NCBI RefSeq assembly: GCF_902713615.1
Contig: NC_052158.1
Location: 12,830,546-12,894,545, forward strand
Direction of reading: 5' to 3'
Length of the DNA stretch: 64,000 bases
From: Scyliorhinus canicula
Lineage: Eukaryota
Positions 1,561 to 64,000 of the stretch are shown here, one piece after another. The notes beneath the pieces were generated by a model, which was not told the DNA's origin, did no database searches, and was given only the letters and a program-made list of their open reading frames with translations. The position numbers were made by a program, and so were the translations under genes. The stretch's first letter is position 1. The number at the start of each line of letters is the position of its first letter.

Positions 1561-3600
1561 CCCATTCTGTATTTGAGATCAGTAATAATCCTGTTCCATG
1601 TATGAGATTAGTAACAATCCTGTTCCCTGTCTGAGATTAGTAACAACCCTATTCTGTGCTCTAGATTAGTAACAACCATGTTCCCTGTTTGAGATTGGGA
1701 ACAATTATTTTCCTAGCATGTTTCAGACGAGTAACAATTTTGATCCCAATGTGTTTGTCATTACTAACAATCCTGTTCCCATTTTATATAGGATTAATGA
1801 CAATCCTGTTCGATGTTGAGATTAATAACAATCCTGTTCTGTGTCTCAGATTAGTAAGAATCATGTTTCATGTTTGAGATGAGTAACAATCATGTCCCCA
1901 TGTGTTTTCGATCAGTAACAATCATTTTCCTAGTTTGAGATTAGTAACAATCATGATCTCACAGTTCTTGAGATTAGTAACATGACTGTTCTGTGTCTGA
2001 GATTTGTAGCAAACCTGTTCTGTTGATGAGATGAACAACCATCCTGTTCTCTATCCTAGATTAGTAATAATCCTGTTCTCACATGTTTGAGATTAGTAAC
2101 AATCCTGTTCCCTCTACTTGAGATTATTGCAAAATCTGTTCCATGGTTGAGATGAGTAACAATTGCGATCCCAATTTTCACACTAGTAACAATCCTGTTC
2201 ACACCGTGTTTGAGATTACCAACAATCTGTTCCCATTTTATATGGGATTAGTGACAATCCTGTTTGATGTTTGAGATTTGTAGCAATTCTGTTCTGTGTC
2301 TCAGATTAGAAAGAATCCTGTTTTGTATTTGAGATGAGTAACAATCATGTTCCCCTGCGTTTTCAATCAGTAACAAACCCTTTCCTACAGTTTGAGATTG
2401 TAACAATCATGTTCCCACAGTTCTTGAGATTAGTAATATTCTTGTTCCATGCCTGAGATTAGTAACAGTTCTGTTCAGTGTCTCAGATTAGTAGCAAACT
2501 TGTTCTGTTTATGAGATTAGTAACAATCCTGTTCTGTGTCTAGATTAGTAACAGTCCTGTTTCCACTCTGTTTGAGATTTGTAACAATACTATTCCCTCT
2601 GTATTTGAGATTATTGCAAAATTTATTCCTTGTTTGAGCTGAGTAACAATTGTGTTTCTAGTTTTGAGATTAGTAACAATCTTGTTCACACTGTGTTTGA
2701 GGTTAGATGCAATTTTGTTATCAACATATTTTTAGATGAGAAACAATCCTGTTCTTATAGTTTTTGAGATTAATAACAATCCTGTTCCCATGTGTTTTCC
2801 ATTAGTAACAATCCTGAGCCCACCATTTGAGATTATTATCAATCACTTTCCCACAGTTTTTGAGATTAGTGATGGTCCTATTCCGTATCTGAGATTAGTG
2901 ACAATCCTGGTCCATGTTTGAGGTAAGTAAGCAATGCTTTTCCATATTTTAGATTAGGAACAATCCTATTCCCAATGTCTTTGACATTACTAACACTCCT
3001 GATCCCACTATATTTGGGATTGGTGACAATCCTATTCGTTATTTGTGATTAGTAATAATCCTGTTCTGTGTTTGAGATTAGGAGCAATCCTGTTCTGTGC
3101 CTGTAATTAGTAACAATCCTGTTCTGTGTCCTAGATTAGTAATAGTCCTGTTCCGTGATTAAGATTCATAACAATTCTGTTGCATGTCTGAGATTAGTAA
3201 CAATCCTGTTTCGTTTATGAAATCAATAACAATCCTGTTCTGTGTCCCAGATTAGTAACAATCCATTTCATGTCTGAGATTAGTAACAATCCTGTTCCAT
3301 GTCTGTGATTAGTAACAATCCTATTCCCACTGTTTTTGAGATTAGTTACAATCCTATTCCATGTCTGAGATTAGCAACAATCCATTTCTATGTCTGAGGT
3401 TGATAACAGTCCTGTGCCGTGTCAGAGGTTACTAAAAATCCATTTCCGTATTTGAGATTAGCAACAATCCTGTTCCATGTTTGTCATTAGTAACAATTGT
3501 TCTGCCACTCTTAGAAAGCGAGCAGTCAATTCTAGCCCCACATGCCAAGGAGTCACAACACAAGTGAATTAACTAATAATTCTTATCAAAATACCCGTCC

Positions 3601-6170
3601 TTAACAAGGTCTTTAAGGAATTCTATGAGATGTTGTACAGTTGTGAACCACCTGGGAGAGACCGGGAGATGCAGGAATTTATAGATGGGCTGGAGTACCC
3701 GAGGTTAGGGGAGGGGGACAGGGCTACATTACAAAGGGCGATAGTGGAGCAGGAGATAAAAGATGCGATTGGGAGGATGCAGTCAGGGAAGGTGGCAGGG
3801 CTGGATGGGTTTCCGGTGGAATATTATTTTAAAAATTCAAGGATTAGCCGGCACCGCTGATGGTGGGTATGTTTGAGGAGGTGATAGGGAAGTGGGTGTT
3901 GCCACAAACTTTGGGGCAGGCATTGATTTCCCTGTTTCTTAAAAAAGACAAGGATCAGACGAGTGTGGATCAAATTGGCCCATATCACTTTTAAATGTGG
4001 ACACAAAGATATTGGCGAAGATACTGGCAGGTAAACTGGTGGAGTGCTTCCCAAAGGTGATGGGTGAAGATCAGATGGGATTTGTGAGAGGGAGGCAGCT
4101 CTTTTCGAACATTAGGAGGGTATTGAATGTGGTTATGGCACTGGCGGAGGGGAAGGAAACGGAGGTGGTTGTGGCATTGGATGCCGAGAAAGCGTTTGAC
4201 TGGTAGAATGGGGGTACTTGATGGCAGTTCTGGAGCAGTTTGTGATTGGACCATGATTTGTGGACTGGGTAAAGCTACTGTACAAGGAGCCGAGGGCGAG
4301 TGTCTGCACAAATAACGTCAGCTCAGGATACTTTTTTCTCCACTGTGAGACCAGGCAGGGATGTCCTATGTCACCTCTGCTGTTTGCACTCGCAATTGAG
4401 CCATTGGCCATCGCGTTAAGTTTTGGGGTATGGAAAGGAATAGTGCGGGGTGGGGGGTGTAGAGTATAGGATGCCCTTATATGCTGATGACTTGCTGTTA
4501 TACATGTTGGAATCAAGTGTGCCAATAGGGGGAATATTGGAGCCGCTTCGAGTGTTTGGGTCTTTCTCATGGTACAAATTAAATCTGGGCAAGAGTGAGT
4601 ATCTTGTGGTGTCTCGGACAGGGGTGGATGAAGGGATGGGGGGGCGGAGGGGGGCCTTCCGTAGGGCTGGGACTCACTTTAGATATTGGGGGGTGCAGGT
4701 TGCTCTGGATTGGGAGGGGGGCCTCCATAGGTACAACATTTCTAGTTTGGTGGGGAGGATGAAAGCTGATCTGGCAAGGTGGGATCAGGGTCAGGTCATG
4801 ACGGGTCAGGTACAGGTGGTTAAAATGAACATGTTGCCGCGATTTTTATTTATTTTCCAATGCCTGCTGATTTTCCTGCCAAAGGCTATTTTTAGAGAGA
4901 TTGAAGGAATTATTACCTCGTTCATATGTGGAGGGAAGGTGGCCAGAATTAGAAAGGTGTTGCTACAGAGGGGAAGGCAGGCAGGGGATTTGGGTCTTCC
5001 GAACCTGATGTATTACTACTGGGGAGCGAATGTAGAGAAGGTACGGAGCTGGGTCGGAGGGGTTGATTCCCAGTGGGTCAGAATGGAGGAGAGTTTGTGT
5101 AGGGGTCGGGATTGAAGGCGCTAGCAACAGCGCCGTTCCCAGGGACATACTCAGGGAGTCCGGTAATAATAGCTTCATTGAGAATTTGCAGGCAGTTTTG
5201 CCAGTTCTTTGGATTGGGGCAGGGTCAAGGGAAATGCCAATTCGGGGGAACCACAGATTTGAGCCAGGGAAGTGGGATGGAAATTTTCAGAGATGGGAGG
5301 ACAAGGAAATTAGGACACTAAAAGATTTGTTTCTTGGGGGTCGGTTTGCAGGACTGAAGGAGCTGGGAGTGAAGTATGGGCTCAAACAGGGGGAAAATGT
5401 TTAGATACATGCAGGTTTGAGATTTTGCCAATAAGGAGATAGGAGTTTCCCGGTGGAGCTGGCCTCCACGTTGCTGGAAGAGGTGCTGACGACAGGGGCT
5501 CTTTGAGGTGGTAGAAGGTGTTCGTGAACATTACGGGGAGGGCTCCGCAAACCACTTTTATATGTTTTGGTCCTATCCAAAGCTGGAGATTACTGGAAGG
5601 AGGTTTTAGGGTAATCTCTAAAGTGGTGCATGTGAAACTGGACCCGGGCCCTCGGGAGGGCATATTTGGGGTATCAGACCAGCCGGGGTTGGAAATGGGT
5701 GCAGGAACAGATGTTGTAGCCTCGCCTCGTTGATTGCCCGAAGGCAGATCCCGTTGGGATGGAGATCAACCTCTCCACCCTGTGCCCTTGGTGTGGCGGA
5801 GGGACCTGCTGGAATTCTTGACGCTTGAGAAGGTTAAGTTTGAACTGAAGGAAAGGATGGAGGGGTTTTACAATTCATGGGCGTTATTCATTACGCACTT
5901 TAGAAAATTGGATTACATTGAACATTAGGGGGGCGGATCGGAGGGTTGGGGGGAGGGGGACTGAATGTGTTAATGGTGATTGTGGGGGATTCCTTATTCC
6001 TTTTTGTTTATGTTAACATGCGGGTTGTTGTTTGGGGGTTGGGTGGGAGGATGGGATTGTTGTTATTGATATGCGGATTGACATTGCATTTGTTATTGAT
6101 TATTATTTGTTAGTGGGTGTAAATTTGGAAGAAATTGTGAAAAAGAATAAAAAATTGTGTTTTAAAAAAA
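3601..6170 (+). mobile_element. 5'-truncated, frameshifted L1-clade LINE (ORF2 reverse transcriptase and 3' UTR)
   Basis: ORF fragments GKVAGLDGFPVEYY, LDAEKAFD, QGCPMSPLLFALAIEPLA, YADDLLLY; G-rich 3' UTR; AATAAA at 6146 followed by an A-run. Confidence 0.9.
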
Positions 6171-6526: not shown

Positions 6527-9135
6527 CATGGGTAATGCTGAAATATGCAATAATTCCAACTGAATAACAAACAAGGTAACCTACTAACCCCTTTAACTGT
6601 CCCATCCTTGACCAACATAGACAAGACCAACAGACACAGAGGATGTGGTTGGGCGGGAGGTGGGGGAGGGGTGGAAATAGTAAGGACGAAGATCAAAGAT
6701 GAATCTTTGCTTTTAATGGTTATTCTGTAGCAGGCGTTCCTCGCAGAACGTTGGTTGATCAAAGCCTTTGGTACACAGCTGGTGATGGTCTTCTTTGCAG
6801 ACTCATTCAATCAGTACAGTATACAGGCAGCAGGCCTTCTAGAGGGTCACTTTAGTTGTTATCAAACTGGGCCTTCAACTCGAGGCTCGCACTCAGGCTT
6901 ATTTTTTCTTGAGACACTACATTTCACATCAAACCCCTGCTTCCAGCTCCTGGTTTGACGTCATGCCTTTGCAGCCTCGATAAAATGGTACCCAAACTTA
7001 CTGGAAAGAGTGAATGTCCTCATGGTGGCCTTCTGAAGAGAGTTTAGCTGGATCTTCTGGGTGAGAAATAATTAGAACCTCCATTAAAGCTGCAGAATCA
7101 AAAGTGAAACCAAAAACCCTTGAAGCTCTACAACAGTCCAGTGGGGTGAGATCCAATGACCATCTGTTACCGGGCAGAGCACAGCTTTTTGGGCCAATTC
7201 GTTGGCCAGCAGCACATCAATCAAACCAATTCATCACTGAGGCCATCTAATCTCCAATCACCACAGCACAGCCTTATGTATGAATTAAAGGTACAGGTTG
7301 TTTAGCCTTAATTTCACAAGTCCATTAAACATCCAGGGATCAAAAATGCAACAACAAAAATAAGAGAAAGGGGAAACAAGGGATCAAACAAGGAAAACAC
7401 AGGATCAAACAGGAAGGACCTTTACACAATCCTGTTCTCAATGTTTTTGAGATTAGGTGCAATCCTGTTCCATGTCTGAGATCAGTAACAATCCTGTTCC
7501 ATGTTCATGATTAGTAACAATCGTGTTCTGAGTCTGATATTAGTAACAATGCTGTTCCAGGATTAAGAGATTAGTAACAATTCCATTCTACGTTTGAGAT
7601 TAATTACAATCCTGTGCCACGTCTGATATTACTCACAATCCATTTCCATATCTGAGATTAATTACAATTCTGCTGCGTCTGAGATTAATAATAATCGTGT
7701 TCCGTGTCTGAGATTCATAAAAATCCTGTTCCATGCCTGAAATTAGTAACGATCCTGATCCATGTCTGAGATTAGTAACTATCCTGTTCCGAGTCTGAGA
7801 TTAGTAACGATCCTGTTCCGAGTCTGATATTAGTAACAATCCTGCTTCGGGTCTGACATTAATAACAATCCTGCTCCGGGTCTGAGATTAGGAACAATTC
7901 TGTCTAAAATTAGGAACAATCTTGTACCCTGTCAGTGATTATGAACAATCTATTTCCGTGTCTGAGATTAGTAACAACCCTGTTCCTTGTCTGGTCCATT
8001 AAACATCCAGGGATCAAAAATGCAACAACAAAAATAAGAGAAAGGGGAAACAAGGGATCAAACAAGGAAAAAACAGGATCAAACAGGAAGGACCTTTACA
8101 CAATCCTGTTCTCAATGTTTTTGAGATTAGGTGCAATCCTGTTCCATGTCTGAGATCAGTAACAATCCTGTTCCATGTTCATGATTAGTAACAATCGTGT
8201 TCTGAGTCTGATATTAGCAACAATGCTGTTCCATGATTAAGAGATTAGTAACAATTCCATTCTACGTTTGAGATTAATTACAATCCTGTGCCACGTCTGA
8301 TATTACTCACAATCCATTTCCATATCTGAGATTAATTACAATTCTGCTGTGTCTGAGATTAATAATAATCGTGTTCCGTGTCTGAGATTCGTAAAAATCC
8401 TGTTCCATGCCTGAAATTAGTAACGATCCTGATCCATGTCTGAGATTAGTAACTATCCTGTTCCGAGTCTGAGATTAGTAACGATCCTGTTCCGAGTCTG
8501 AGATTATTAACAATCCTGTACCATGTCTGTGATTACTAACAATCCTGCTCTGTGTCTGAGATAAGGAACAATCCATTTCTGTGTGTGAGATTTGTAATAA
8601 TCCAGTTCCGTATTTGTGATGAGCAACAATCCTGTTCCCACTGTTCTTTAAGATTAGTTGTATTCCTGTTCCATGTCTGAGATTAGTAACAATCCTGTTC
8701 TATGTCTGAGATTAGTAACAATCCTGTTCTGTGTCTGAGATTAGTAACAATCCTGCTCCATCTTTGTGATTAGTAACAATCCTGTTCCCACCACTTTTGA
8801 GATTAGTTGCAGTCCTGTTTGATGTATGAGATGAGTAACAATCCTGTTCCATGCCTGAGTTAAGTAACAATCCTGTTGCGTGTCTGATTAGTAACAATTC
8901 TGTCCTGTGTCTGAGTTTAGTAACAATCCTGATCCGTTTAGGAGGTTAGCAACAATCCTGTCCCATATATGAAATCAGTAACAATCAAGTTCTATGTATG
9001 ATATTAATCACAATCCTGTTCCATGTATCAGAGTCGGAACAATTGTGTTCCATGTCAGAAATTAATAACAATACAGTTCCATGTTTAAGGTTAGTAACAA
9101 TCCAGTTCCCTGTATGAGATTAGTAACAATCGTGT

Positions 9136-9870
9136 TTGGCTAATGGTAAGATTCTTGGTAGTGTGGATGAGCAGAGGGATCTCGGTGTCCATGTACATAG
9201 ATCCCTGAAAGTTGCCACCCAGGTTGATAGGGTTGTGAAGAAGGCCTATGGTGTGTTGGCCTTTATTGGTAGAGGGATTGAGTTCCGGAGCCATGAGGTC
9301 ATGTTGCAGTTGTACAAAACTCTAGTACGGCCGCATTTGGAGTATTGCGTACAGTTCTGGTCGCCTCATTATAGGAAGGACGTGGAAGCTTTGGAACGGG
9401 TGCAGAGATTTACCAGGATGTTGCCTGGTATGGAGGGAAAATCTTATGAGGAAAGGCTGATGGACTTGAGGTTGTTTTCGTTAGAGAGAAGAAGGTTAAG
9501 AGGTAACTTAATAGAGGCATACAAAATGATCAGAGGGTTAGATAGGGTGGACAGTGAGAGCCTTCTCCCACGGATGGAGGTGGCTAGGACGAGGGGACAT
9601 AGCCTTAAATTGAGGGGTAATAGATATAGGACAGAGGTCAGAGGTAGGTTTTTTACGCAAAGAGTGGTGAGGCCGTGGAATGCCCTACCTGCAACAGTAG
9701 TGAACTCGCCAACATTGAGGGCATTTAAAAGTTTATTGGATAAGCATATGGATGATAATGGCATAGTGTAGGTTAGATGGCCTTTAGGTTTTGACTTCCC
9801 ATGTCGGTGCAACATCGTGGGCCGAAGGGCCTGCACTGCGCTGTATCATTCTATGTTCTATGTTCTATGT
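9136..9870 (+). mobile_element. CR1 LINE 3' fragment (ORF2 C-terminus and 3' UTR)
   Basis: 211-aa ORF with LVRPHLEYCVQFWSPHYRKD and FFTQRVVRPWNALP; (TTCTATG)n tail. Confidence 0.92.
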
Positions 9871-15999: not shown

Positions 16000-16950
16000 T
16001 CCTCCCTCAGTACTGACCCTCTCACAAGGTAGCACTCCCTCAGTGCTGACCCTCTGACAGTGCAGCACTCCCTCAGTACTGACCCTCTGACAATGCAGCA
16101 CTCCTTCAGTACTGACCCTCTGACAATGCAGCACTCCCTCAGTACTGACCCTCTGACAGCGCAGCACTCCCTCAGTACTGACCCTCTGACAATGCAGCAC
16201 TCCCTCAGTACTGACCCTCTGACAAGGCAGCCCTCCCTCAGTACAGACCCTCTGACAGTGCAGCACTCCCTCAGTACTGACCCTCTGACAGTGCAGCCCT
16301 CCCTCAGTACTGACCCTCTGACAAGGTAGCCCTCCCTCAGTACAGACCCTCTGACAGTGCAGCACTCCCTCAGTACTGACCCTCTGACAAGGCAGTCCTC
16401 CCTCAGTACAGACCCTCTGACAGTGCAGCACTCCCTCAGTACTGACCCTCTGACAGTGCAGCACTCCCTCAATACTGACCCTCTGACAGTGCAGCACTCC
16501 CTCAGTACTGACCCTCTGACAGTGCAGCACTCCCTCAGTCCTGACCCTCTAACAGTGCAGCACTCCCTCAGTACTGACCAACAGTGCAGCACTCCCTCAG
16601 TACTGACCCTCTGAAAGTGCAGCCCTCCCTCAGTACTGACACTCCAACAGTGCAGCACTCCCTCAGTACTGATCCTCCGACAGTGCAGCACCCTCAGTAC
16701 TGACCCTCTGACAGTGCAGCACTCCCTCAGTCCTGACCCTCTCACAGTGCAGCACTCCCTCAGTACTGACCCTCCAACAGTGCAGCACTCCCTCAGTACT
16801 GACCCTCTGAAAGTGCAGCCCTCCCTCAGTACTGACACTCCGACAGTGCAGTGCTACTTCAGTACTGACCCTCCAACAGTGCAGCACTCCCTCAGTACTG
16901 ACCCTCTGACAGTTCAGCACTCCCCCAGTCCTGACCTAACAGTACAGCAG
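16000..16950. repeat. 33-bp minisatellite (~28 copies)
   Basis: Unit CAGTACTGACCCTCTGACAGTGCAGCACTCCCT. Confidence 0.95.
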
Positions 16951-16983
16951 TCTCTATCTACTGCATATGTCAGCCTAGAGTAT

Positions 16984-18468
16984 GGCCGGAAATCTCCATT
17001 TGGAAGTCTAATTGTTCCCGTCGAGACTGAATTGCATGTGATCCATGTTTCCATTGGGGGTATTCGGTAGCAAGTCAGGACATGCAAAGAGGCCAGCACT
17101 CTGCCAACAATAATTAAAATCAACTCCTGCCCCAGCGGGTGTTGTAACCGCTGAGGCCGGAATTAGAGCCAAAGAGACTGACGGCTGGCACTTTTTAAGC
17201 GCTCCACTTACCACACACTCACTGCAGCCACAAAGATCTGCCCCCTGAGATCAGGGGTCTGAGAAGGACCCACTGCTCCATGTCTGTGAGAAGAGGAGGG
17301 ACACCCTCTTCCCCAGGGTGGGCCGCAGACTGAAGCCCACCCTCCTGAATGGCATCTGAGGGGTGGTGTTTGAGGCAGTCAGCGCTGCCAGCCTCACCAG
17401 GAGGAGATAGGCCGTGATCCTGAGGTGTGGGGGTCACCGGTGAGGTCTCTGCCCTGAGAGGGGCGGAGAACCAGGGAGGTTTTCAAAGGCCACAGTGCAG
17501 GTGTCTTTGGTTTGGAGTGAGCTCTGCTGGTCCCCTGCTTCCTCTGCAGTGGGGCAGGGCTTCTGAGGAACACCAATAACCGGTGGGCCACTCTCATCCA
17601 CTTGATGACACAGCTGAGGTTTGAGGGTTTCCCGAGGGACAGCCTGGTTCGGCTCCCAGATGACCAGTGGCTCTCTGGACATTTACAGGACACAATGAGC
17701 ACTCAGCAGTCTGGAGGTGGCACCAAAGGAGTGTGTTTAAATCACATTCTGCAGCAATGGAGTTCTGAGCCAAGTCACCCAGGTCCTGAGGTGGACACCC
17801 CGAGTCCACGAGGACCAAGTTGTTCCCTGCTACTGGCCTCGGCCCGCGCAGCCACCTCCTCAAAAACACCGACAATCTTTGAGGCTTTTTCAGAGTTTTT
17901 TTTAGCCTTCCGCCCCCCCTCCGCCAAAGAGGCATGGAGCATCGTGGGGAAGGGGAGGGCGGGGGGGGGGGGGGGGGGGGGGGGGGGTGGAGCATGGAGT
18001 GTCCAAAACCATACATTATATTGAAATCCATACAATTGATGGTTTGCATGGTCTCGCTGGCACGGGACACAAGCTTTCATTTATTTGTTTTTAAAAAAAT
18101 TTTTAATTTAGAGTACGCAATTAATTTTTTCCAATTAAGGGGCAATTTAGCGTGGCCAATCCACCTATCCTGCACATCTTTGGGTTGTGGGGGCGAAACC
18201 CACACAGACACGGGGAGAATATGCAAACTCCACACGGACAGTGACTCAGAGCCGGGATCGAACCTGTGACCTCGGCGCCGTGAGGCAGCAGGGCTAACCC
18301 ACTGCGCCACCGAGCTGCCCTGACACAAGCTTTGATAACGCCAGCGAGGGACTGGAGCACGGTGCCAGAATCGGCTCCGGGTACAAAACAGATTTATTTT
18401 CCATTTCCAGCAATTCTCCACCTGATCACAATTCCAGCTGCCGGCACTCGAGGCGAAGAATTTGGCCC
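16984..18468. mobile_element. Possible non-autonomous DNA transposon (PIF/Harbinger-like termini) with nested SINE
   Basis: Starts GGCCGGAAATCTCC and ends GAAGAATTTGGCCC (imperfect inverted match), similar to the termini at 24558-25135. No clear TSD. Confidence 0.35.
18078..18321 (-). mobile_element. tRNA-derived SINE with 12-bp TSD
   Basis: TSD GACACAAGCTTT at 18066-18077 and 18322-18333. Confidence 0.9.
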
Positions 18469-44808: not shown

Positions 44809-44829
44809 ATGGCTTCCCTGGATGCTGAG
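44809..44829 (+). CDS. EHMT2: EHMT2/G9a coding exon 1 (MASLDAE)
   Basis: Strong Kozak context, 21 nt, donor GAG|GTGAGA, phase 0. Resembles the short first coding exon of EHMT1 (MAAADAE). Confidence 0.75.
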
Positions 44830-51629: not shown

Positions 51630-53340
51630 GCCTCTGACCTCGCCCCTCCTCAGACTTCACCCTCGCCCCCTCCTTAGACTCCACCCTCACCCCCTCCTCA
51701 GACTTCACCCTCGCCCATTCCCCGAACTTTCTCCTCCTCAGACTCCACCCTCACCCCCTCCTTAGACTTCACCCTCACCCCCTCCTTAGACTCCACCCTC
51801 ACCCCCTCCTTAGACTCCACCCTCACCCCCTCCTTAGACTTCACCCTCACCCCCTCCTTAGACTTCACACTCACCCCCCCTCATACCTCACCCTCACTCC
51901 TTCCTCAGACTCCAGCCTCATTCCCTCCTCATACCCCAGCGTCACTCCCTCCTCATACCCCAGCCTCACTCCTTCCTCTGACCCCAGCCTCACTGCCTCC
52001 TCAGACTCCAGCCTCACTCCCTCCTCAGACCCCCACCTCACTCCCTCCTCAGACCCCAGCCTCACTCCTTCCTTAGACCCCAGCCTCACTCCTTCCTCAG
52101 ACCCCAGCCTCACTCCTTCCTCAGACCCCAGCCTCACTCCTTCCTCAGACCCCAGCCTCACTCCTTCCTCAGACCCCAGCCTCACTCCTTCCTCAGACCC
52201 CAGCCTCACTCCTTCCTCAGACCCCAGCCTCACTCCTTCCTCAGACCCCAGCCTCACTCCTTCCTCAGACCCCAGCCTCACTCCTTCCTCAGACCCCAGC
52301 CTCACTCCTTCCTCAGACCCCAGCCTCACTCCTTCCTCAGACCCCAGCCTCACTCCTTCCTCAGACCCCAGCCTCACTCCTTCCTCAGACCCCAGCCTCA
52401 CTCCTTCCTCAGACCCCAGCCTCACTCCTTCCTCAGACCCCAGCCTCACTCCTTCCTCAGACCCCAGCCTCACTCCTTCCTCAGACCCCAGCCTCACTCC
52501 TTCCTCAGACCCCAGCCTCACTCCTTCCTCAGACCCCAGCCTCACTCCTTCCTCAGACCCCAGCCTCACTCCTTCCTCAGACCCCAGCCTCACTCCTTCC
52601 TCAGACCCCAGCCTCACTCCTTCCTCAGACCCCAGCCTCACTCCTTCCTCAGACCCCAGCCTCACTCCTTCCTCAGACCCCAGCCTCACTCCTTCCTCAG
52701 ACCCCAGCCTCACTCCTTCCTCAGACCCCAGCCTCACTCCTTCCTCAGACCCCAGCCTCACTCCTTCCTCAGACCCCAGCCTCACTCCTTCCTCAGACCC
52801 CAGCCTCACTCCTTCCTCAGACCCCAGCCTCACTCCTTCCTCAGACCCCCGCCTCACTCCCTCCTCAGACCCCAGCCTCACTCCTTCCTCAGACCCCAGC
52901 CTCACTCCTTCCTCAGACCCCAGCCTCACTCCTTCCTCAGACCCCAGCCTCACTCCCTCCTCTGACCCCGACTCACTCCCTCTGACCCCTGCCTTGCTGC
53001 CACCTCAGACCCCAGCCTCACTCCCTCCTCATATCCCAGCCTCACTCCCTCCTCAGACCCTAGCCTCACTCCCTCCTCAGACCCTAGCCTCACTCCCTCC
53101 TCAGACCCCAGCCTCACTCCCTCCTCAGACCCCAGCCTCACTCCCTCCTCAGACCCCAACCTCACTCCCTCCTCAGATCCCAGCCTCACTCCCTCCTCAG
53201 ACCCCAGCCTCACTCCCTCCTCAGACCCCAACCTCACTCCCTCCTCAGACCCCAACCTCACTCCCTCCTCAGACCCCAACCTCACTCCCTCCTCAGACCC
53301 CAACCTCACTCCTTCCTCAGACCCCACCCTCGCCCCTCAT
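51630..53340. repeat. 24-bp pyrimidine-rich VNTR-type array with a nearly perfect core
   Basis: Unit CCTCAGACCCCAGCCTCACTCCTT, homogeneous from ~52080 to 52940 with degenerate edges. Confidence 0.97.
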
Positions 53341-53491
53341 CAGACTGTCCCAGTCTCCCCTCCTTCTCATGGGCCATTCCTGTCCCAACAGGGTGCCAGG
53401 TTGGAGGAAATGGTGAGGAGAATGAATTAAATTGAAACCAGTTTGTTTTTCTGTTGAAGCATATTCAGGAATTATGCTTGTCTTTATCCAG

Positions 53492-53576
53492 GGGGAGGCT
53501 AATAGAACGGGTCAGGCCACAGCAGAACCAGAGCTCCTGGGGCTGGATCCAAGCCCCAGCAGTGAAGTAAACCAAG
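53492..53576 (+). CDS. EHMT2: EHMT2 coding exon 2 (GEANRTGQATAEPELLGLDPSPSSEVNQ)
   Basis: Acceptor TCTTTATCCAG, donor AAG|GTAAGG, 85 nt. Phase 0->1 bridges exon 1 and exon 3; starts GEA like recalled EHMT2. Confidence 0.72.
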
Positions 53577-56625: not shown

Positions 56626-57804
56626 CCCATAATAATAATCTTTATTGTCACAAGAAGGCTCACATTGACACTGCAATGAAGTTACTGTGAAAAGCAACTC
56701 CTTACCGTTTCCTACTGCTACTGTGTGTGGTTATGTGAGTGGTGGTGTCCACTAACAGAAAAATTTCAGGCTCCCTATTTCTTCTCCAGCCCTATAACCC
56801 ACCAAAATCCTGGCACTCTTTCAATTCTGGCCTCTTGACTAACCCCAGTTATAATTGCTCCAACATTGGTGGTCATACCTTCAGCTGCACAGGCCCTAAA
56901 CTCTGGACTGCCCTCACTAAATCTCTCTGTCTCCCTTTTGTCCTTCAATTCCTTTACTCTGACCAAACGTTTAGTCATCTGTCCTAATATCTCCTCGTGG
57001 GTCAGTGGGTTCCTTTGGACATTTTACCTCAGACTTTACTTTGGCTGTTTACATACAAAAGCAAATTGTTTCTTATTCATTCATGAGACTTGAGCATCGC
57101 TGGCTAGGCCAGCATTTATTGCCCCTCCCTAATTGCCCTTGAGAAGATGGTGGTGAGCTGACTTTATGAACCGCTGCAGTCCCTGAGGTGTAGGTACAGT
57201 CACCGTGCTGTCAGTGAGGGAGTTCCAGGGTTTTGACCCAAATGTTGATGTGATGCTGAGGTTGTACTAAAAGGGAAAGAGTGAACAGGCCAGGGACCCT
57301 TTTCTCTAGAAAAGGGAAGACGGAGGGATGACCTGATCGAGGTCTTCAAAGGTATGAAAGAATTTGATAGAATAGACATAGGGAAGTCATTCCTACTGGC
57401 GGGCAGGGACCATCAATATAAGATGAATACAACAGGAGTAGTGGGAATATAAAACTCTATCACGCAGAGCGGTTGAGGTGAATAGTATAGATACCTTTAA
57501 AGGGAAGCTGGGTAAACAGGAGGGAGAAAAGAACGGAAGGATAAGTTGATGGAATGAGATGAAGGAGGGGCGTGAGGAGGCTTGTGTGAAGATTAAACAC
57601 CAGCATGGATCAGTTGGGTGGAAAGGCTGGTTTCTGAGCTGTGAACACTTTTGCAATGGAGAGTGCGGTTTGTTAATTTGACGCGTTTCCTTGCTCATCG
57701 CAACCGTCATGCCTCGGGACACTCACCCTTGCTCGAATGTGCGGTGGGAGGTGGGAAGTGCAATGCAACCCGGGAAATAAATGTGGCGTGGTTTTATTTT
57801 GCAG

Positions 57805-58134
57805 GGATCGGCGAAGCAGCAGAACTGTCCCCCAAGAAACTGGGGCAAGTGTCAAATCCCGTGGCGGGTGCTGTAGGTGCAATGGGAAACATCGCCTTGC
57901 AGAATAACGCTGAGGTACCGTGCTCTGGGACCAGCCAAGAGATCGCGGCGAAGGCCCCTGATCCTGAAACCGCGACGGTTACAGATGCCCGAGGGGAAGA
58001 GTCGGCAAGCAGCGGCGAAGCACAGGGCAAATCTGGTGAGCCCTATCTGGGCTCGGAGTGCTCGTCCTCTGATGGTGCAGCTGTCAGCCGGCTGGGATCT
58101 CAACCCGGACCTCTTCCTGTCAAGGGCCTCTCAG
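57805..58134 (+). CDS. EHMT2: EHMT2 coding exon 3 (low-complexity N-terminal region)
   Basis: Acceptor TTTTATTTTGCAG, donor CAG|GTAACT, 330 nt, phase 1->1, open frame. Confidence 0.75.
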
Positions 58135-58744
58135 GTAACTATTCCCTGGTGTTTACGTCACCTCGGTTGTAAGTAGGTTGTCCAAGAGATATGTGGTGGC
58201 AGGGAGAACTTTGGGAATCCTCATGGAGTCAGTAAGTAACAATTGGGGGCAGGGGGGGGGGGTTGACAGCCGGGGCCTTCGCTTTAATTGACAAGAATCA
58301 GACGGGGTGAGGTGTCACGTTCTTTGACGCAGCAGAATGTTGTGGTCCAAAATAGCCGGCACTCTACAATTCTGACCTCTTGTGCATCCCAGATTCTATT
58401 TGCTCCACAATTGGCTTTCAGTTACCCGGGCCCTAAAAGCCCTGGGATTGCCTCCCTAAAACCCCTCCTCTTTTCTCTTTTAAGGCCTCCTCAAAACCAA
58501 TGTGGCTCTGTCAGATTTTAAAGTGCCTTGGGGCATTTTACTGCTTTGAAGACATGATACAACTGCAACTTGTTGTTGAAAGACTCGTGGGAGCAGATTC
58601 AACAATAGCTTTCAATGGAGGTTTGGGTGAATATTTGGAAGAGCAAAATGAAATTGTCGGACTAAGGGGAAGGAGCAGAAGAGGGGATTTCGAAGGGTTC
58701 AATGATCTCTTCTTGCCCTCTTCACTTGGATTTCAATTGGATTG

Positions 58745-59755
58745 GGTTGGATTTTGTTTGTTGCCACGTGTACCGAGGTACAGTGAAAAGTATTTTTCTG
58801 CGAGCAGCTCAACAGATCATCAAGTACATGAAAAGGAAATAAAAGAAAATACATAATAGGGCAACACAAGGTAAACAATGTAACTACATAACACCGACAT
58901 CAGGTGAAGCATACAGGGTGTAGTGTTAATGAGGTCAGTCCATAACAGGGTGTTTAGGAGTTTGGTAACAGCGGGGAGGATGCTGTTTTTGAGTCTGTTT
59001 GTGCGTTTTCTCAGACTTCTGTATCTCCTGCCCAATGGAAGAAGTTGGAAGAGTGAGTAAGCCGGGCGGGAGGGGTCTTTGATTATGCTGCCCGCTTTCC
59101 CCTGGCAGCGGGAGGTGTGGATGGAGTCAATGGATGGGAGGCAGGTTCGTGTGATAGACTGGGCTGTGTTCACGATTCTCTGAAGTCTTGCGGTTTTGGG
59201 CCGAGCAGTTACCATACCAGGCTGTGATGCAGCCAAATAGGATGCTTTCTATGGTGCATCTGTAAAAGTTGGTAAGAGTTAATGCGGACATGCCGAATTT
59301 CCTTAGTTTCCTGAGGCACTACAGGCGCTGCTGTGCTTTCTTGGTGATAGCGTCGACGTGGGTGGACCAGGACAGATTTTTGGCGATGTGCACCCCAAGG
59401 AATTTGATACTGCTAACCATCTCTACCTTGAGCCGTTGATGCTGACAGGGGTGTGTACAGGACTTTGCTTTCTGACGTTAATGGCCAGCTCTTTAGTTTT
59501 GCTGGAATTAAGGGAGAGATTGTTGTCGCTGCACCACTCCACTAGGTTCTCTATCTCCCTCCTGTATTCTGACTCGTCATTATTCGAGATCCGGCCGACT
59601 ATGGTCGTATCGTCAGCAAACTTGGAGATGGAGTTGGAACCGAATTTTGCCACGCAGTCATGTGTGTATAGGGAGTATCGTAGGGGGCTAAGTACATAGC
59701 CTTGCGGGGTCCCGGTATTGAGGCCTAGTGTGGAGGTGATGTTGTTTATTCTTAC
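58745..59755 (-). mobile_element. Rex1/Babar-clade LINE 3' portion
   Basis: SKFADDTTIVGRISNNDESEYRREIENLVEWCSDNNLSLNSSKTKE; LLPLGRRYRSL. Confidence 0.88.
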
Positions 59756-59811
59756 TGATTGTTAACTGTTCTTAACTGATTCTCACTTGTATTGATGATT
59801 TCTTCCCTCAG

Positions 59812-60071
59812 GTCATGCTGCCAAAACATTCCCCGCCTCCCCCACCAAGGCCCCAGGGGCCAACAGGGCTAAGATGACACTAACCGGGGTCAGCAAGTCT
59901 CCAAATTCCATTCAGAGCCTTGCCATGAAACTGCTGAGTGTGCCGACCGGCCGGGCAGGGAATGAGGTAGCGGCGGTCCCGGTGGAGGCGCAGAGGCCGG
60001 TGGCAGCTCCGGACGACAAGCCCAAGATCCACAAAGCTCGGAAGTCGATATCCAGATCCAGCGCCAGTCAG
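59812..60071 (+). CDS. EHMT2: EHMT2 coding exon 4 with the H3K9-mimic motif
   Basis: GHAAKTFPASPTK...RAKMTLTGVSKSPNSIQSLAMKLLSVP...KPKIHKARKSISRSSASQ aligns with recalled G9a GHATKSFPSSPSK...RAKMSMTGAGKSPPSVQSLAMRLLSMP...QPKVHRARKTMSK. Acceptor TTCTTCCCTCAG, donor CAG|GTACCG, 260 nt. Confidence 0.92.
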
Positions 60072-60284
60072 GTACCGAAGGGGGTGGTCTGCCTATGAGC
60101 TGTGCTTGCACGGAGGGATGAGCACTTGCATTGCCGCTGCGTTTGCCCCACCTTGGCCAGGCTGTGAGGATGAGGAGGGCGATGAGCTGAGGAAAAGTCG
60201 CTTGTCCCTTAAATCCTGTGACTCAAAGATGAGAGGAGTGGTCACAACTGACACGAGTGCAAAAGCCAGACTCACCCTCCCTGT

Positions 60285-60580
60285 ACTGCACTGAGGTGGT
60301 GCTGTCTGTCAGATGAGATGTTAAATTGAGGCCCCCATTTGCCTACTTGAGTGGATGTTAAAAAAAAAAAAATCCCTTGACACTATTTTGAGAAAGAGCA
60401 GGGGAGTTTTCTCCGGTGTCCTGGCTAATATTTATCCCTCAAATTAACATTACAGTAACACTATCTGGTCATTATCGCATTGTTATTTGTGGGAGCTTGC
60501 TGTGAGTAAATTAGCTGCTGCCTTTCCTACGATACAACAGTTTGAAAAGTATCGGCTGTAAAGGGCTTGCTGAGGTAGTA
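60285..60580 (+). mobile_element. DeuSINE (SacSINE1/AmnSINE-like) fragment
   Basis: AGATGAGATGTTAAA...GAAAGAGCAGGGGAGTT...GGTGTCCTGGCTAATATTTATCCCTCAA...TGTGGGAGCTTGCTGTG core. Confidence 0.7.
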
Positions 60581-60801
60581 AAAGATTCCCCATAACCAGC
60601 CTGGATGGTGCCAAGGAAATTTGGGATTTGCATGACGAGGGGTGGATGTGGACAAGAAAATGTGACCTGAGATTGCTTGCACTAGATTTTTGCGTTCTTA
60701 ACTCGGCAGCCATTCAGTTAAAGCTCACTTTGCTCAAAAATATTGCATCCCCCCCCCCCCACCCAAAAAAAATTCTCCTCTTCTTTGCGGCTTTTACACA
60801 G

Positions 60802-60954
60802 AGATTGCCTACAGAACTGGGGACCTTGCCCACCGACCGGGCAAGCCAGGCTCCTGGAGCGGCGGCAGAAGTGGAGCACGTAGTCCCGGCTCAGGACGAG
60901 AATCAAGAGGTGCACAGAGCAAGGAAGTCGATACTGAAAGGCAGCTTCAGTCAG
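60802..60954 (+). CDS. EHMT2: EHMT2 extra exon A (duplicate of the exon 4 3' half; second ARKS)
   Basis: Acceptor CTTTTACACAG, donor CAG|GTACGG, 153 nt, phase 0-0; RLPTELGTLPTDRA...QDENQEVHRARKSILKGSFSQ. Confidence 0.8.
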
Positions 60955-61446
60955 GTACGGTGAGCGTGGACCCCTTTGGACCGGCCAGCCAGCTATAGTA
61001 AATAAGGGGAAGCTGACGTGTGCTGTCTTGCCAGTTTTTTTAAAAAAAAGTATCTCCCACCCGAAAGCCTCTTCGGAATTAACACCCCAACTGCTCCCTG
61101 ACGGCCGTCTCACACTTTGGGTGAGTTTTGAGATTGCTCTGAGTTTGGAGGCACGACCAGTAACCCTGCTGTTGCCGTCCCACCAGTTCACTCTTCTCCG
61201 TGTGTGTGTCTCTCTCATGACCCACAAGGAAGAAGACTCCAGTCCTACTTGTAGGTGGCCATTCGGCCCATTTTCATATTGACTTGATGGCATTTGTTTG
61301 GGTTGGGGAGGAGGCGGAGATGGAGAATTGGGCCAGCAGACAGCAGGGAGCAACACGCTAAAGGTCTCGATGGCAAATGACAGGTGAGTAGGTATGCCAG
61401 GAGCTCCTTGAGCATCTTTCCCCGCATGCACTGCTGCTGTGTGCTC

Positions 61447-61755
61447 GGGCAGCATGGTTGCACAATGGTTAGCACTGTTGCTTCACAGAGCCAGGGTCCC
61501 ATGTTCGATTCCTGGCTTGGGTCACTGTCTGTGCGGAGTCTGTACATTCACCCTGTGTCTGCGTGGGTTTCCTCCGGGTGTTCCAGTTTCCTCCCACAAT
61601 TCTCGAAAGACATGCTGTTTGCTGAATTGGACATTCTGAATTCTCCCCGTGTACCTGAACAGGCGCCGGAATGTGACGACGAGGGGCTTTTCACAGTAAC
61701 TTCATTGCAGTGTTAATGTAAGCCTACTTGCGACAATAAAGATTATTTATTTATA
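61447..61755 (+). mobile_element. tRNA-derived SINE
   Basis: Head, core and GACAATAAAGATTATT tail. Confidence 0.85.
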
Positions 61756-61929
61756 TTTGTAGTAAAATGGAGAAGAGTATACAATTCTTGAGCTCCTTGG
61801 ACGGATGAGCAACAGTCTGTCCTTCCCTGGGCTGGCTTGTCCCCTTCTTAAAATTTCACTTTCAATCCTGGTGTAAACGCAGCTTTTCTTGGCAGGTTGC
61901 TTCGTGGTGCGGTTGTTCGCGGCTCTAGT

Positions 61930-62310
61930 CATGGCCCAGTGGGTAGCACTCTCTCTTCCTGTGTGCTATAAGTCGCCCTCCTCGGTTCCAGTACAGGGGA
62001 AAAGCTGCATTGTCAGGGATGCCATCAATCGAGGGAGCCTTGCTTCTGCCCCCTCAGGTGGTTGTGACAGATCCACCATTTGGAAAGAGAGCGGGGGAAT
62101 TTTCCCTGCTGCCCAGATCCAATATTTATCCCTTAACCAACACCACGAAAGGCCGTTATCATATTACTGTTTGTGGGGAGTTTACTGTGCACAAACTCCT
62201 GCCACATTTCCTACATTACAACCGTCACTACATTTCAGAAAGGACTTCATTGGCTGTAAAGCCATTTGGGACATTTTGAGGCTGTGAAAGGCGCTCTGTA
62301 AATGCATCGC
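61930..62310 (+). mobile_element. DeuSINE-like fragment
   Basis: Similar to 60285-60580; ends TTGGCTGTAAAGC...GTGAAAGGCGCTCTGTAAATGCA. Confidence 0.65.
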
Positions 62311-62868
62311 CGCCTTCTTGAAGCCTATCAGTCGCCTTTTACTACCCCTAATGCTCCTTTTAACTGCCGCCGGGTACTTGAATAGAAGCGTACATTTGAC
62401 TAAATCTGCCTCTTCTGCAGAAAGCTGGATTTTATTAAGTGCAGTGTGATTATAACACTGCTAACAGCTCCAAGGGCAGCACGGTAGCACAGTGATTGGC
62501 ACAGTTGCTTCACAGCTCCAGGGTCACGGGTTCGATTCCCAGCTTGGGCCACTTGCCTGTGCGGAGTCGGCAGCTTCTTCCCGTGTCTGTTCTTTCCAAG
62601 AGCCGGTGCAGACTCGATGGGCCGAATGGCCTCCTTGTGCACTGTAAATTCTATGATTCAATGAACAGCTTTTTGTGAAGTGGATGGGGCGGATTACGTG
62701 TCAAAGTTGCACTTTTTGGGTGGTTTGGTGCAGTGGGAGGTATAAAATGGTGAACACGCACAAATAGTCCCATTGGCAGCAAGTCCGCCATTGTGTGTGA
62801 AGCAAAGTATTCCATTCCGCGACATCCGATTGCTTGTTTGTGACTGATTTATGCCTCACTCCACACAG

Positions 62869-63018
62869 AGCTTGGCGGAGAAGTTGGCGAGCTTGCCCAT
62901 TGGACGGGCAGTTGGTGATGCTGCTGGGGGAACGGCAGAGCAGGCCGCACAGCCTCAAGACGAGAACCAGGATGTTCACCGAGCCAGAAAGTCCATCCTG
63001 AAAGGCCCCTTCAGTCAG
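62869..63018 (+). CDS. EHMT2: EHMT2 extra exon B (duplicate of the exon 4 3' half; third ARKS)
   Basis: Acceptor CTCCACACAG, donor CAG|GTAAAG, 150 nt, phase 0-0; SLAEKLASLPIGRA...QDENQDVHRARKSILKGPFSQ. Confidence 0.82.
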
Positions 63019-63329
63019 GTAAAGAGAGAAAAGCCCTCACTTAGCTTTTGCAAATTGATGGCCAAATCGGAAAAATATTAAAATGCTGGGGTGATTACGG
63101 TCTCCATTATAATTGTGTAAATAAGGGACTTCAAACTTTACGGCAGAGGTAGACAGATTCTTCACTAACAAAGCAGTCAAGGGATACGGGGAGGAGGGGG
63201 GACGGATGGCGTAGGTAAGATTGTGTTGAGGCCACAATCAGTTCAGCTGTTATTGAACTTTGGGGAAGGTTCCTGTTTCTAATTTGGATGTTCATTTGCA
63301 CACAAGAGGCTGATTGGAAGATTTAATAC

Positions 63330-64000
63330 CCTCCTCGCTCTGCCCCTCCCCTCCTCGCTCTGCCCCTGCCCCCCTCGCTCTGCCCCTGCCCCCTCGCTCT
63401 GCCCCTCCCCACCTGCTCTGCCCCTCCCCCCTCGCTCTGCCCCTCCCCTCCTCCCTCGCTCTGCCCCTCCTCCCTCGCTCTGCCCCTCCCCTCTTCGCTC
63501 TGCCCATCCCCACTCGCTCTGCCCCTTGCCCCTCCCCCTCGCTCTGCCCTCCCCCTCGCTCTGCCCCCCCCTCGCTCTGCCCCCCCCTCGCTCTGCCCCT
63601 CCCCCTCGCTCTGCCCCTCCCCCTCGCTCTGCCCCTCCCCCTCGCTCTGCCCCTCCCCCTCGCTCTGGCCCCCCCCCCTCGCTCTGCCCCTCCCCCTCGC
63701 TCTGCCCCTCCCCTCGCTCTCTGCCCCTCCCCTCGCTCTGCCCCTCCCCTCGCTCTGCCCCTCCCCCTCGCTCTGCCCCTCCCCCTCGCGCTGCCCCTCC
63801 CCCTCGCTCGCCCCCCCTCGCTCTCCCCCTCCCCCTCGCTCTGCCCCTCCCCCTCGCTCTGCCCCTCCCCCTCGCTCTGCCCTCCCCCTCGCTCTGCCCC
63901 TCCCCCTACTCGCTCTGCCCCTCCCCCTCGCTCTGCTGCCCCTCCCCCTCGCTCTGGGCCCCTCCCCCTCGCATCTGCCCCTCCCCCTCGCATCTGCCCC
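63330..64000. repeat. ~18-bp C-rich tandem repeat, runs off the right edge
   Basis: Unit CCTCGCTCTGCCCCTCCC(CC). Confidence 0.95.

Follow-up and report, generated by a model that had tools for sequence, protein, structure and literature searches.

How a histone methyltransferase that carries one copy of its own substrate in mammals came to carry several copies in a shark, and what these copies might do, is the question raised by a 64-kb stretch of DNA from Scyliorhinus canicula (contig NC_052158.1; the whole stretch of 64,000 nucleotides is called the window, and coordinates are window positions unless another numbering is given). The gene concerned is EHMT2 (G9a, KMT1C), in mammals the textbook writer with a copy of its own substrate, a copy whose role is debated and which matters for the HP1-dependent coactivator function of the enzyme. 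This "histone mimic" of mammalian G9a was reportedly described by Sampath and by Chin, both in 2007. For the shark gene an original prediction, made from the letters of the window, had described a triplicated ARKS motif. We find that the array comprises five homologous units (U1 to U5), each ending in an ARKS motif. Three of them lie within the window, as follows.

59812..60071, + strand: U1, the ancestral exon (GHAAKTFP...SLAMKLLS...KIHKARKSISRSSASQ) with K223; in other vertebrates its orthologue is the single HRARKT exon (homology, RNA contigs, model)
60036..60047, + strand: ARKS codons of U1, GCT CGG AAG TCG (sequence)
60802..60954, + strand: U2, a duplicated exon of 153 nt, phase 0-0, C-terminal end EVHRARKSILKGSFSQ, with K274 (homology; joints 60071>60802 and 60954>62869 in three studies)
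60919..60930, + strand: ARKS codons of U2, GCA AGG AAG TCG (sequence)
62869..63018, + strand: U3, a duplicated exon of 150 nt, phase 0-0, C-terminal end DVHRARKSILKGPFSQ, with K324 (homology; RNA contigs running past 63019)
62983..62994, + strand: ARKS codons of U3, GCC AGA AAG TCC (sequence)

The three ARKS motifs were found exactly where the original prediction had placed them, the spliced model starting at ATG 44809 reproduces its numbering of the lysines as K223 (U1), K274 (U2) and K324 (U3), and the ARKS codons differ, as it had noted, only synonymously. Each unit has a SLAxKLxSLP-like block at its N-terminal end and an H(K/R)ARKS block at its C-terminal end, joined by a linker that varies, and all three exons end on the + strand as H(K/R)ARKSI...SQ|GTA. 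The donors read AGTCAG|GTA, all three acceptors are AG, and each exon is preceded by a polypyrimidine tract and CAG. The U1 exon has phase 1 at its start and phase 0 at its end. A degenerate DNA pattern encoding ARKS matched 7 times in the 64-kb window on both strands, against 6.15 matches expected, i.e., not above chance. Since the tetrapeptide pattern alone is at chance level, the significance of the array was sought in the homology of the units and in RNA. The DNA alignment of U1 to U3 gave a mean column identity of 75% over about 150 nt plus the surroundings of the splice sites, and the U2 and U3 proteins are each 43% identical to the second half of U1. No further degenerate copies of the unit were found in the introns when shark N-termini were searched against the whole window by tblastn.

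The original prediction had been right about the three copies in the window and had allowed for more copies beyond it; a total of three does not hold, since two further units, U4 and U5, follow outside. S. canicula EHMT2 carries five ARKS motifs, with the lysines K223, 274, 324, 373 and 425 about 50 residues apart. In the numbering of the gene locus (L001, where the window coordinate equals L001 + 43808), U4 occupies L001:22209-22355 (147 nt, phase 0-0, about 2.0 kb beyond the window end) and U5 L001:22653-22808 (156 nt, phase 0-0, about 2.5 kb beyond it). Each of U2 to U5 is thus encoded on its own symmetric phase 0-0 exon of 147-156 nt. The DNA alignment of all five units shows a mean column identity of 70%, with homology that begins some 9 nt upstream of the acceptor and reaches to the donor GTA. 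The exon duplication that had been proposed is borne out by this DNA homology up to the splice sites, by the symmetric exons and by a one-to-one orthology of the units across sharks and rays. A C-rich minisatellite with an 18-nt unit (CCTCGCTCTGCCCCTCCC, about 36 copies) occupies 63333-64000 in the intron that follows U3 and runs off the window end.

For the evaluation of splicing, RNA-derived contigs of three independent studies were aligned to 57600-63100: a 4185-nt contig of study X1, a 2041-nt contig of study X4 and two contigs of study X3. The joints 58134>59812, 60071>60802 and 60954>62869 occur in the contigs of all three studies, all of them GT..AG and with a shorter side of 153 nt; the two junctions on which the prediction of extra exons depended are among them. 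The contigs extend past 63019 into exons beyond the window, in study X1 by 3178 nt. U2 and U3 are genuine exons of the major mRNA, and their interpretation as unspliced pseudo-exons is ruled out by the joints.

The exon structure also lends itself to another reading, in which U2 to U5 are cassette exons and alternative splicing sets one to five histone mimics per molecule by tissue or stage. All four extra exons have phase 0-0 and 147-156 nt, so any subset could be skipped in frame; the contigs are compatible with minor isoforms, and 10 joints lie outside those listed. The dominant assembled transcripts of the three studies nevertheless hold U1, U2 and U3 consecutively, and no exon-skipping joint was present among the joints listed, in contigs that hide rare isoforms. 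No unit-skipping isoform was found among 64 further elasmobranch RefSeq isoforms either: all of them retain five motifs in spite of variation in other parts (the elasmobranch species sampled total 19). We regard regulated variation in unit number as quite unlikely. The intronic repeats at about 58700-59650, 61440-61750 and 62470-62650 are covered by RNA contigs at summed depths of about 10^4 to more than 10^5. At least those at 61440-61750 and 62470-62650 resemble short interspersed nuclear elements (SINEs) and are tRNA-derived, and the contigs over the repeats contain many variant letters and loose ends. This signal is genome-wide transcription of repeats, not expression of the EHMT2 locus.

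The window contains the 5' part of S. canicula EHMT2, and the original gene call agrees with the RefSeq identity, the domain set and a tree position apart from EHMT1. Together with U1, U2 and U3, three upstream coding exons form an open frame of 333 amino acids from ATG 44809.

44809..44829, + strand: EHMT2 coding exon 1, with the ATG and MASLDAE (sequence, model translation, identity to S. canicula EHMT2)
53492..53576, + strand: EHMT2 coding exon 2 (tblastn with shark EHMT2; stop-free spliced model with 333/333 RefSeq identity)
57805..58134, + strand: EHMT2 coding exon 3 (covered by RNA contigs of X1, X3 and X4; joint 58134>59812)

All 333 residues of the model (333/333) match the N-terminus of the RefSeq S. 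canicula EHMT2-like isoforms X1-X3; the exons of U1 to U3 are therefore already contained in the automatic RefSeq models. The Pfam scan of the full-length protein revealed the EHMT Cys-rich region, ankyrin repeats, Pre-SET and SET, and no Pfam domain was found within residues 1-748. The SET domain matches the human EHMT2 structure 4nvq with E = 2e-189 and more than 90% identity over 282 residues. In a maximum-likelihood tree of full-length proteins the elasmobranch five-motif proteins are sister to the EHMT2 of bony vertebrates, with 100% support in the Shimodaira-Hasegawa-like approximate likelihood-ratio test (SH-aLRT) against EHMT1. An assignment to EHMT1 or to a lineage-specific extra paralogue, as the RefSeq name "EHMT2-like" might suggest, is ruled out by this tree.

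A phmmer search of the whole library with U1 returned 8 proteins, of which four matched in 4-5 stretches and the other four, fragments of mammalian G9a, in a single one; by later searches and cluster look-ups the proteins with multiple stretches were recognized as EHMT2 of sharks and rays. Motifs were then counted by a regular expression in 127 proteins and 65 further proteins, 64 of which are the cluster isoforms mentioned above. Five ARKS motifs are present in every elasmobranch EHMT2 counted, i.e., in 19 species, and in all 64 further isoform models. The sharks are Scyliorhinus canicula, S. torazame, Mustelus, Cetorhinus, Carcharodon, Rhincodon, Chiloscyllium (two species), Stegostoma, Hemiscyllium, Heterodontus and Heptranchias; rays and skates are represented by Hemitrygon, Mobula (two species), Narcine, Amblyraja, Leucoraja and Rhinoraja. 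The sample outside the elasmobranchs consisted of coelacanth, lungfish, ray-finned fishes and tetrapods; no chimaera (Holocephali) EHMT2 was among the matches returned by the protein searches or by the whole-library HMMER search, and no teleost or lamprey protein was among the rows returned. Exactly one HRARKT occurs in every complete EHMT2 of Latimeria, Protopterus, Polypterus, Acipenser and Amia and of caecilians, newt, many frogs, turtle, alligator, birds and mammals. The same is true for every complete EHMT1 sampled, including that of the five-motif sharks and rays. EHMT models with zero motifs are few, and all are short or partial. The comparison of ARK[S/T] counts that the original prediction had called for thus yields five in sharks and rays and one in the complete EHMT2 of the other vertebrates sampled. 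Because a single motif is found in all other complete EHMT2 and EHMT1 proteins sampled, the single copy is judged ancestral and the expansion specific to elasmobranch EHMT2.

Two observations concern the annotation of these proteins. In Rhinoraja longicauda the adjacent "uncharacterized" loci LOC144602501 and LOC144602500 each comprise only the N-terminal part of EHMT2 with the full five-ARKS array, which reflects either a local duplication or a split in assembly or annotation. An N-terminal EHMT2 fragment of Heptranchias is misnamed "nucleolar and coiled-body phosphoprotein 1-like" in RefSeq.

The age of the array was deduced from a tree of 71 units, in which U1, U2, U4 and U5 each form one group with both sharks and rays. 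U1 is placed beside the bony-vertebrate single units. With low support, U3 is paraphyletic to U2, so U2 and U3 are the youngest pair. Because the units group by position across sharks and rays, the four duplications are judged older than the shark-ray split and the units retained since, which puts the lower age bound of the array at the shark-ray ancestor. A recent duplication or concerted evolution is ruled out, as the units cluster by position and not by species.

Conservation within the units is unevenly distributed. Between U2 and U3 of the window, the proportions of nonsynonymous (pN) and synonymous (pS) differences are 0.06 and 0.73 in the last 21 codons, and 0.40 and 0.53 in the remainder. 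Across an alignment of 17 sequences, none of the five units departs from H[KR]ARKS; the linkers are variable and contain indels. No stop codon or loss of the motif was found in any unit of any species sampled. A concentration of purifying selection on the peptide motif block, as the original prediction had proposed from the synonymous codons, is supported by the low pN of this block and by the invariance of H[KR]ARKS. It could still be argued that a disordered linker simply expanded by neutral repetition, or that the annotation is at fault, and that the array has no function of its own, as the region is predicted to be disordered and is of low complexity and the linkers with their pN of 0.40 against a pS of 0.53 are nearly neutral. 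This explanation is largely refuted: the RNA evidence shows the exons to be real, the number and order of the copies are the same in 19 species on both sides of the shark-ray split, and the motif block is under strong purifying selection, with no stop or motif loss in any species. We consider it highly improbable.

Each unit contains a second conserved block, SLAxKLxSLP, encoded at 59916-59945 (U1), 60802-60831 (U2) and 62869-62898 (U3); its mammalian form is SLAMRLLSMP. The block may be a partner-binding element that was duplicated together with the ARKS motif.

The boundaries of the units point to a particular mode of origin. In the ancestral exon the homology among the units starts directly behind the Gln codon of ...N-S-I-Q|S-L-A..., and the 3' ends of the extra units correspond to that of the ancestral exon. 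The acceptors of U3 and U4 are preceded by 9 nt of the pattern TCCACACAG, which resembles the coding TCCATTCAG (S-I-Q) of U1 (regions compared: 59900-59915, 60787-60801 and 62854-62868 of the window and L001:22194-22208). A tandem duplication could have copied a segment that began within the ancestral exon and reached into the next intron, and the coding CAG, i.e., the Gln codon of ...NSIQ|SLA..., would have been taken over as a new 3' splice site. Such a partial-exon duplication with a coding CAG as acceptor is plausible from the boundaries. The change from Thr to Ser after the lysine would have preceded the duplications: because all five copies have Ser and the single-copy proteins Thr, a single early substitution is the simplest account.

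For the function of the units, the single mammalian site is the obvious guide. Mammalian G9a automethylates K185 (K239 in mouse), the methyl-lysine binds HP1 proteins and CDYL, and catalysis is unaffected (PMC8541646; PMC2175347); K239me3 of mouse G9a anchors HP1 (PMC2175347), and phosphorylation of T186 by Aurora B opposes reader binding (PMC8541646). What the original prediction had said of the mammalian motif agrees with this literature. G9a prefers A-R-K followed by a hydrophilic and then a hydrophobic residue (PMC8541646), ARKS and ARKT peptides are methylated with similar kcat/Km (PMC2175347, Table 2), and the ARKS/T motif is bound by the Cbx3 chromodomain (PMC3325965). The shark units read A-R-K-S-(I/M/F/L), with H at +2 only in unit 4 of rays and skates, and four of the five units have a basic residue at +4, which U4 lacks. 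By analogy, each ARKS lysine would be methylated by the SET domain of G9a/GLP, in cis or in trans, and the methylated lysine would dock the chromodomain readers HP1/CBX1,3,5, CDYL and MPP8 until phosphorylation of the adjacent Ser by Aurora B switched the docking off. The single mammalian histone mimic would thereby become a five-valent docking arm, switchable by phosphorylation, on a segment predicted to be disordered. AlphaFold2 models the array region with almost no secondary structure, at a mean pLDDT (predicted local distance difference test) of 48 and a pTM (predicted template modelling score) of 0.13, although low confidence from a shallow alignment of 17 sequences is merely suggestive of disorder.

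The five units are most likely methylation-dependent, phospho-switchable chromodomain docking sites. Taken jointly, the anatomy of the five-unit array as observed, its presumed origin and its proposed five-valent docking function form an account which we consider rather probable. Several points weigh against it. The splicing evidence comes from assembled contigs, which mask rare isoforms, and the raw-read RNA run (X20) is nearly empty here, with an exon depth of less than 1 and a single junction read, too shallow to quantify skipping; the inclusion of U4 and U5 is supported by RefSeq models only. The origin of the acceptor from a coding CAG is supported by its position and by a short match of 7 nucleotides in 9 (TCCAyxCAG) in U3 and U4, two paralogs that are hence not independent. 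The conserved SLAxKLxSLP block shows that the ARKS motif is not the sole target of selection. The function is based on motif identity and conservation, and methylation, phosphorylation and binding of shark EHMT2 are all predicted. Finally, because of K-S-H in rays and the missing basic residue at +4, U4 is the weakest candidate among the units; in mouse G9a the exchange K243A, which removes the +4 lysine, lowered K239 methylation (PMC2175347).

The second block gives some room to the view that the units were kept for something other than lysine methylation and reader docking, for instance as partner-binding SLAxKLxSLP helices, as basic nuclear-localisation patches or as kinase sites (R-K-S-hydrophobic) without methylation. 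The block is conserved in each unit and forms the only helix predicted by AlphaFold2 in an otherwise extended, low-confidence model of the array, and R-K-S-I/M/F fits the consensus of basophilic kinases. Residues 1-280 of human G9a, the region in which the block falls, are moreover an autonomous (coactivator) activation domain (PMC8541646). The strongest conservation nevertheless lies on H[KR]ARKS, invariant in the five units of the 17 sequences and found in every elasmobranch sequence counted. This is precisely the motif methylated by G9a and read by chromodomains, and its presumed writer, which is almost the same as the human enzyme, belongs to the same polypeptide. As the sole reason for the retention of the units such functions seem unlikely; a SLAxKL-helix, kinase-site or nuclear-import function may coexist with the docking function.

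Comparison with known systems enables a closer description of what is particular to the shark array. The mammalian G9a site lies in the orthologous protein and exon, with the core (V/I)H(R/K)ARK[ST] after GHA.K...RAKM..TG...SLAM(K/R)LLS and a SET domain more than 90% identical; it differs in that elasmobranchs have five motifs instead of one, the extra copies on four new exons, and in that Thr follows the lysine in mammals whereas all elasmobranch units have Ser, as at H3K9 and H3K27. The automethylated K205 of GLP/EHMT1, with its Aurora B switch at T206, belongs to a paralogous HRARKT at the same N-terminal position (PMC8541646), but this motif is single-copy in all species sampled, including the five-motif sharks and rays. 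Among H3K9 methyltransferases, SETDB1 with K1186/K1194 comes closest as a precedent for more than one H3K9-like automethylation motif in the same enzyme; there the motifs are needed for the chromodomain partners HP1gamma, CDYL and SUV39H1, not for catalysis (bioRxiv 10.1101/2025.10.22.683908). These are two nearby lysines in the catalytic domain, not an array of duplicated exons, and of unrelated sequence origin. ATF7IP (mAM) is likewise a non-histone ARKT mimic written by G9a/GLP and read by the MPP8 chromodomain, with a single site and in a different protein (PMC6172828; PMC2175347). The histone H3 tail shares the identical A-R-K-S core at K9 and K27 and the methyl/phospho switch on adjacent residues (PMC8541646); the shark units have H-R before and I/M/F after the core, in contrast to Q-T and T-G at H3K9, and carry it on the enzyme and not on the nucleosome. 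No description of a multi-copy G9a mimic motif was found in the literature searched, which leaves out most subscription journals.

Going further, the five ARKS sites on a flexible arm might act as a valency device: one G9a/GLP complex could hold several dimeric HP1, CDYL or MPP8 readers, or its own or neighbouring ankyrin-repeat methyl-lysine readers. This could give rise to a cooperative, switch-like chromatin retention or a condensate-forming behaviour without counterpart in single-motif G9a, with joint release at mitosis by Aurora B phosphorylation of the five serines. We put this forward tentatively, as a possibility that is on balance doubtful.

A large minisatellite at 51643-53346 (24/48-nt unit, about 34-72 copies, 92-93% matches) lies within the intron that separates EHMT2 coding exon 1 from coding exon 2. 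Upstream of the EHMT2 start, positions 1-44000 are mostly transposon debris with reverse-transcriptase-like open reading frames (e.g., 3573-5400 and 9127-9768) and many SINE copies. A tandem repeat with a 33-nt unit at 16033-17067 translates as repeats of HSLSTDPLTVQ.

Elasmobranchs thus represent a natural experiment in which a motif that is single in the other vertebrate lineages sampled has been multiplied five-fold and made more histone-like by the exchange of Thr for Ser. By our own estimate of the shark-ray split, the array has been fixed for a few hundred million years. The motif and its valency would be under selection, since the five-fold array has long been fixed while the other vertebrates sampled kept one copy. 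The array is also a clean example of exon birth, presumably through duplication of part of an exon in which a coding CAG was apparently taken over as splice acceptor, and it supplies constructs with one to five motifs for studies of reader multivalency in the targeting of G9a/GLP, the recruitment of HP1 and mitotic release.

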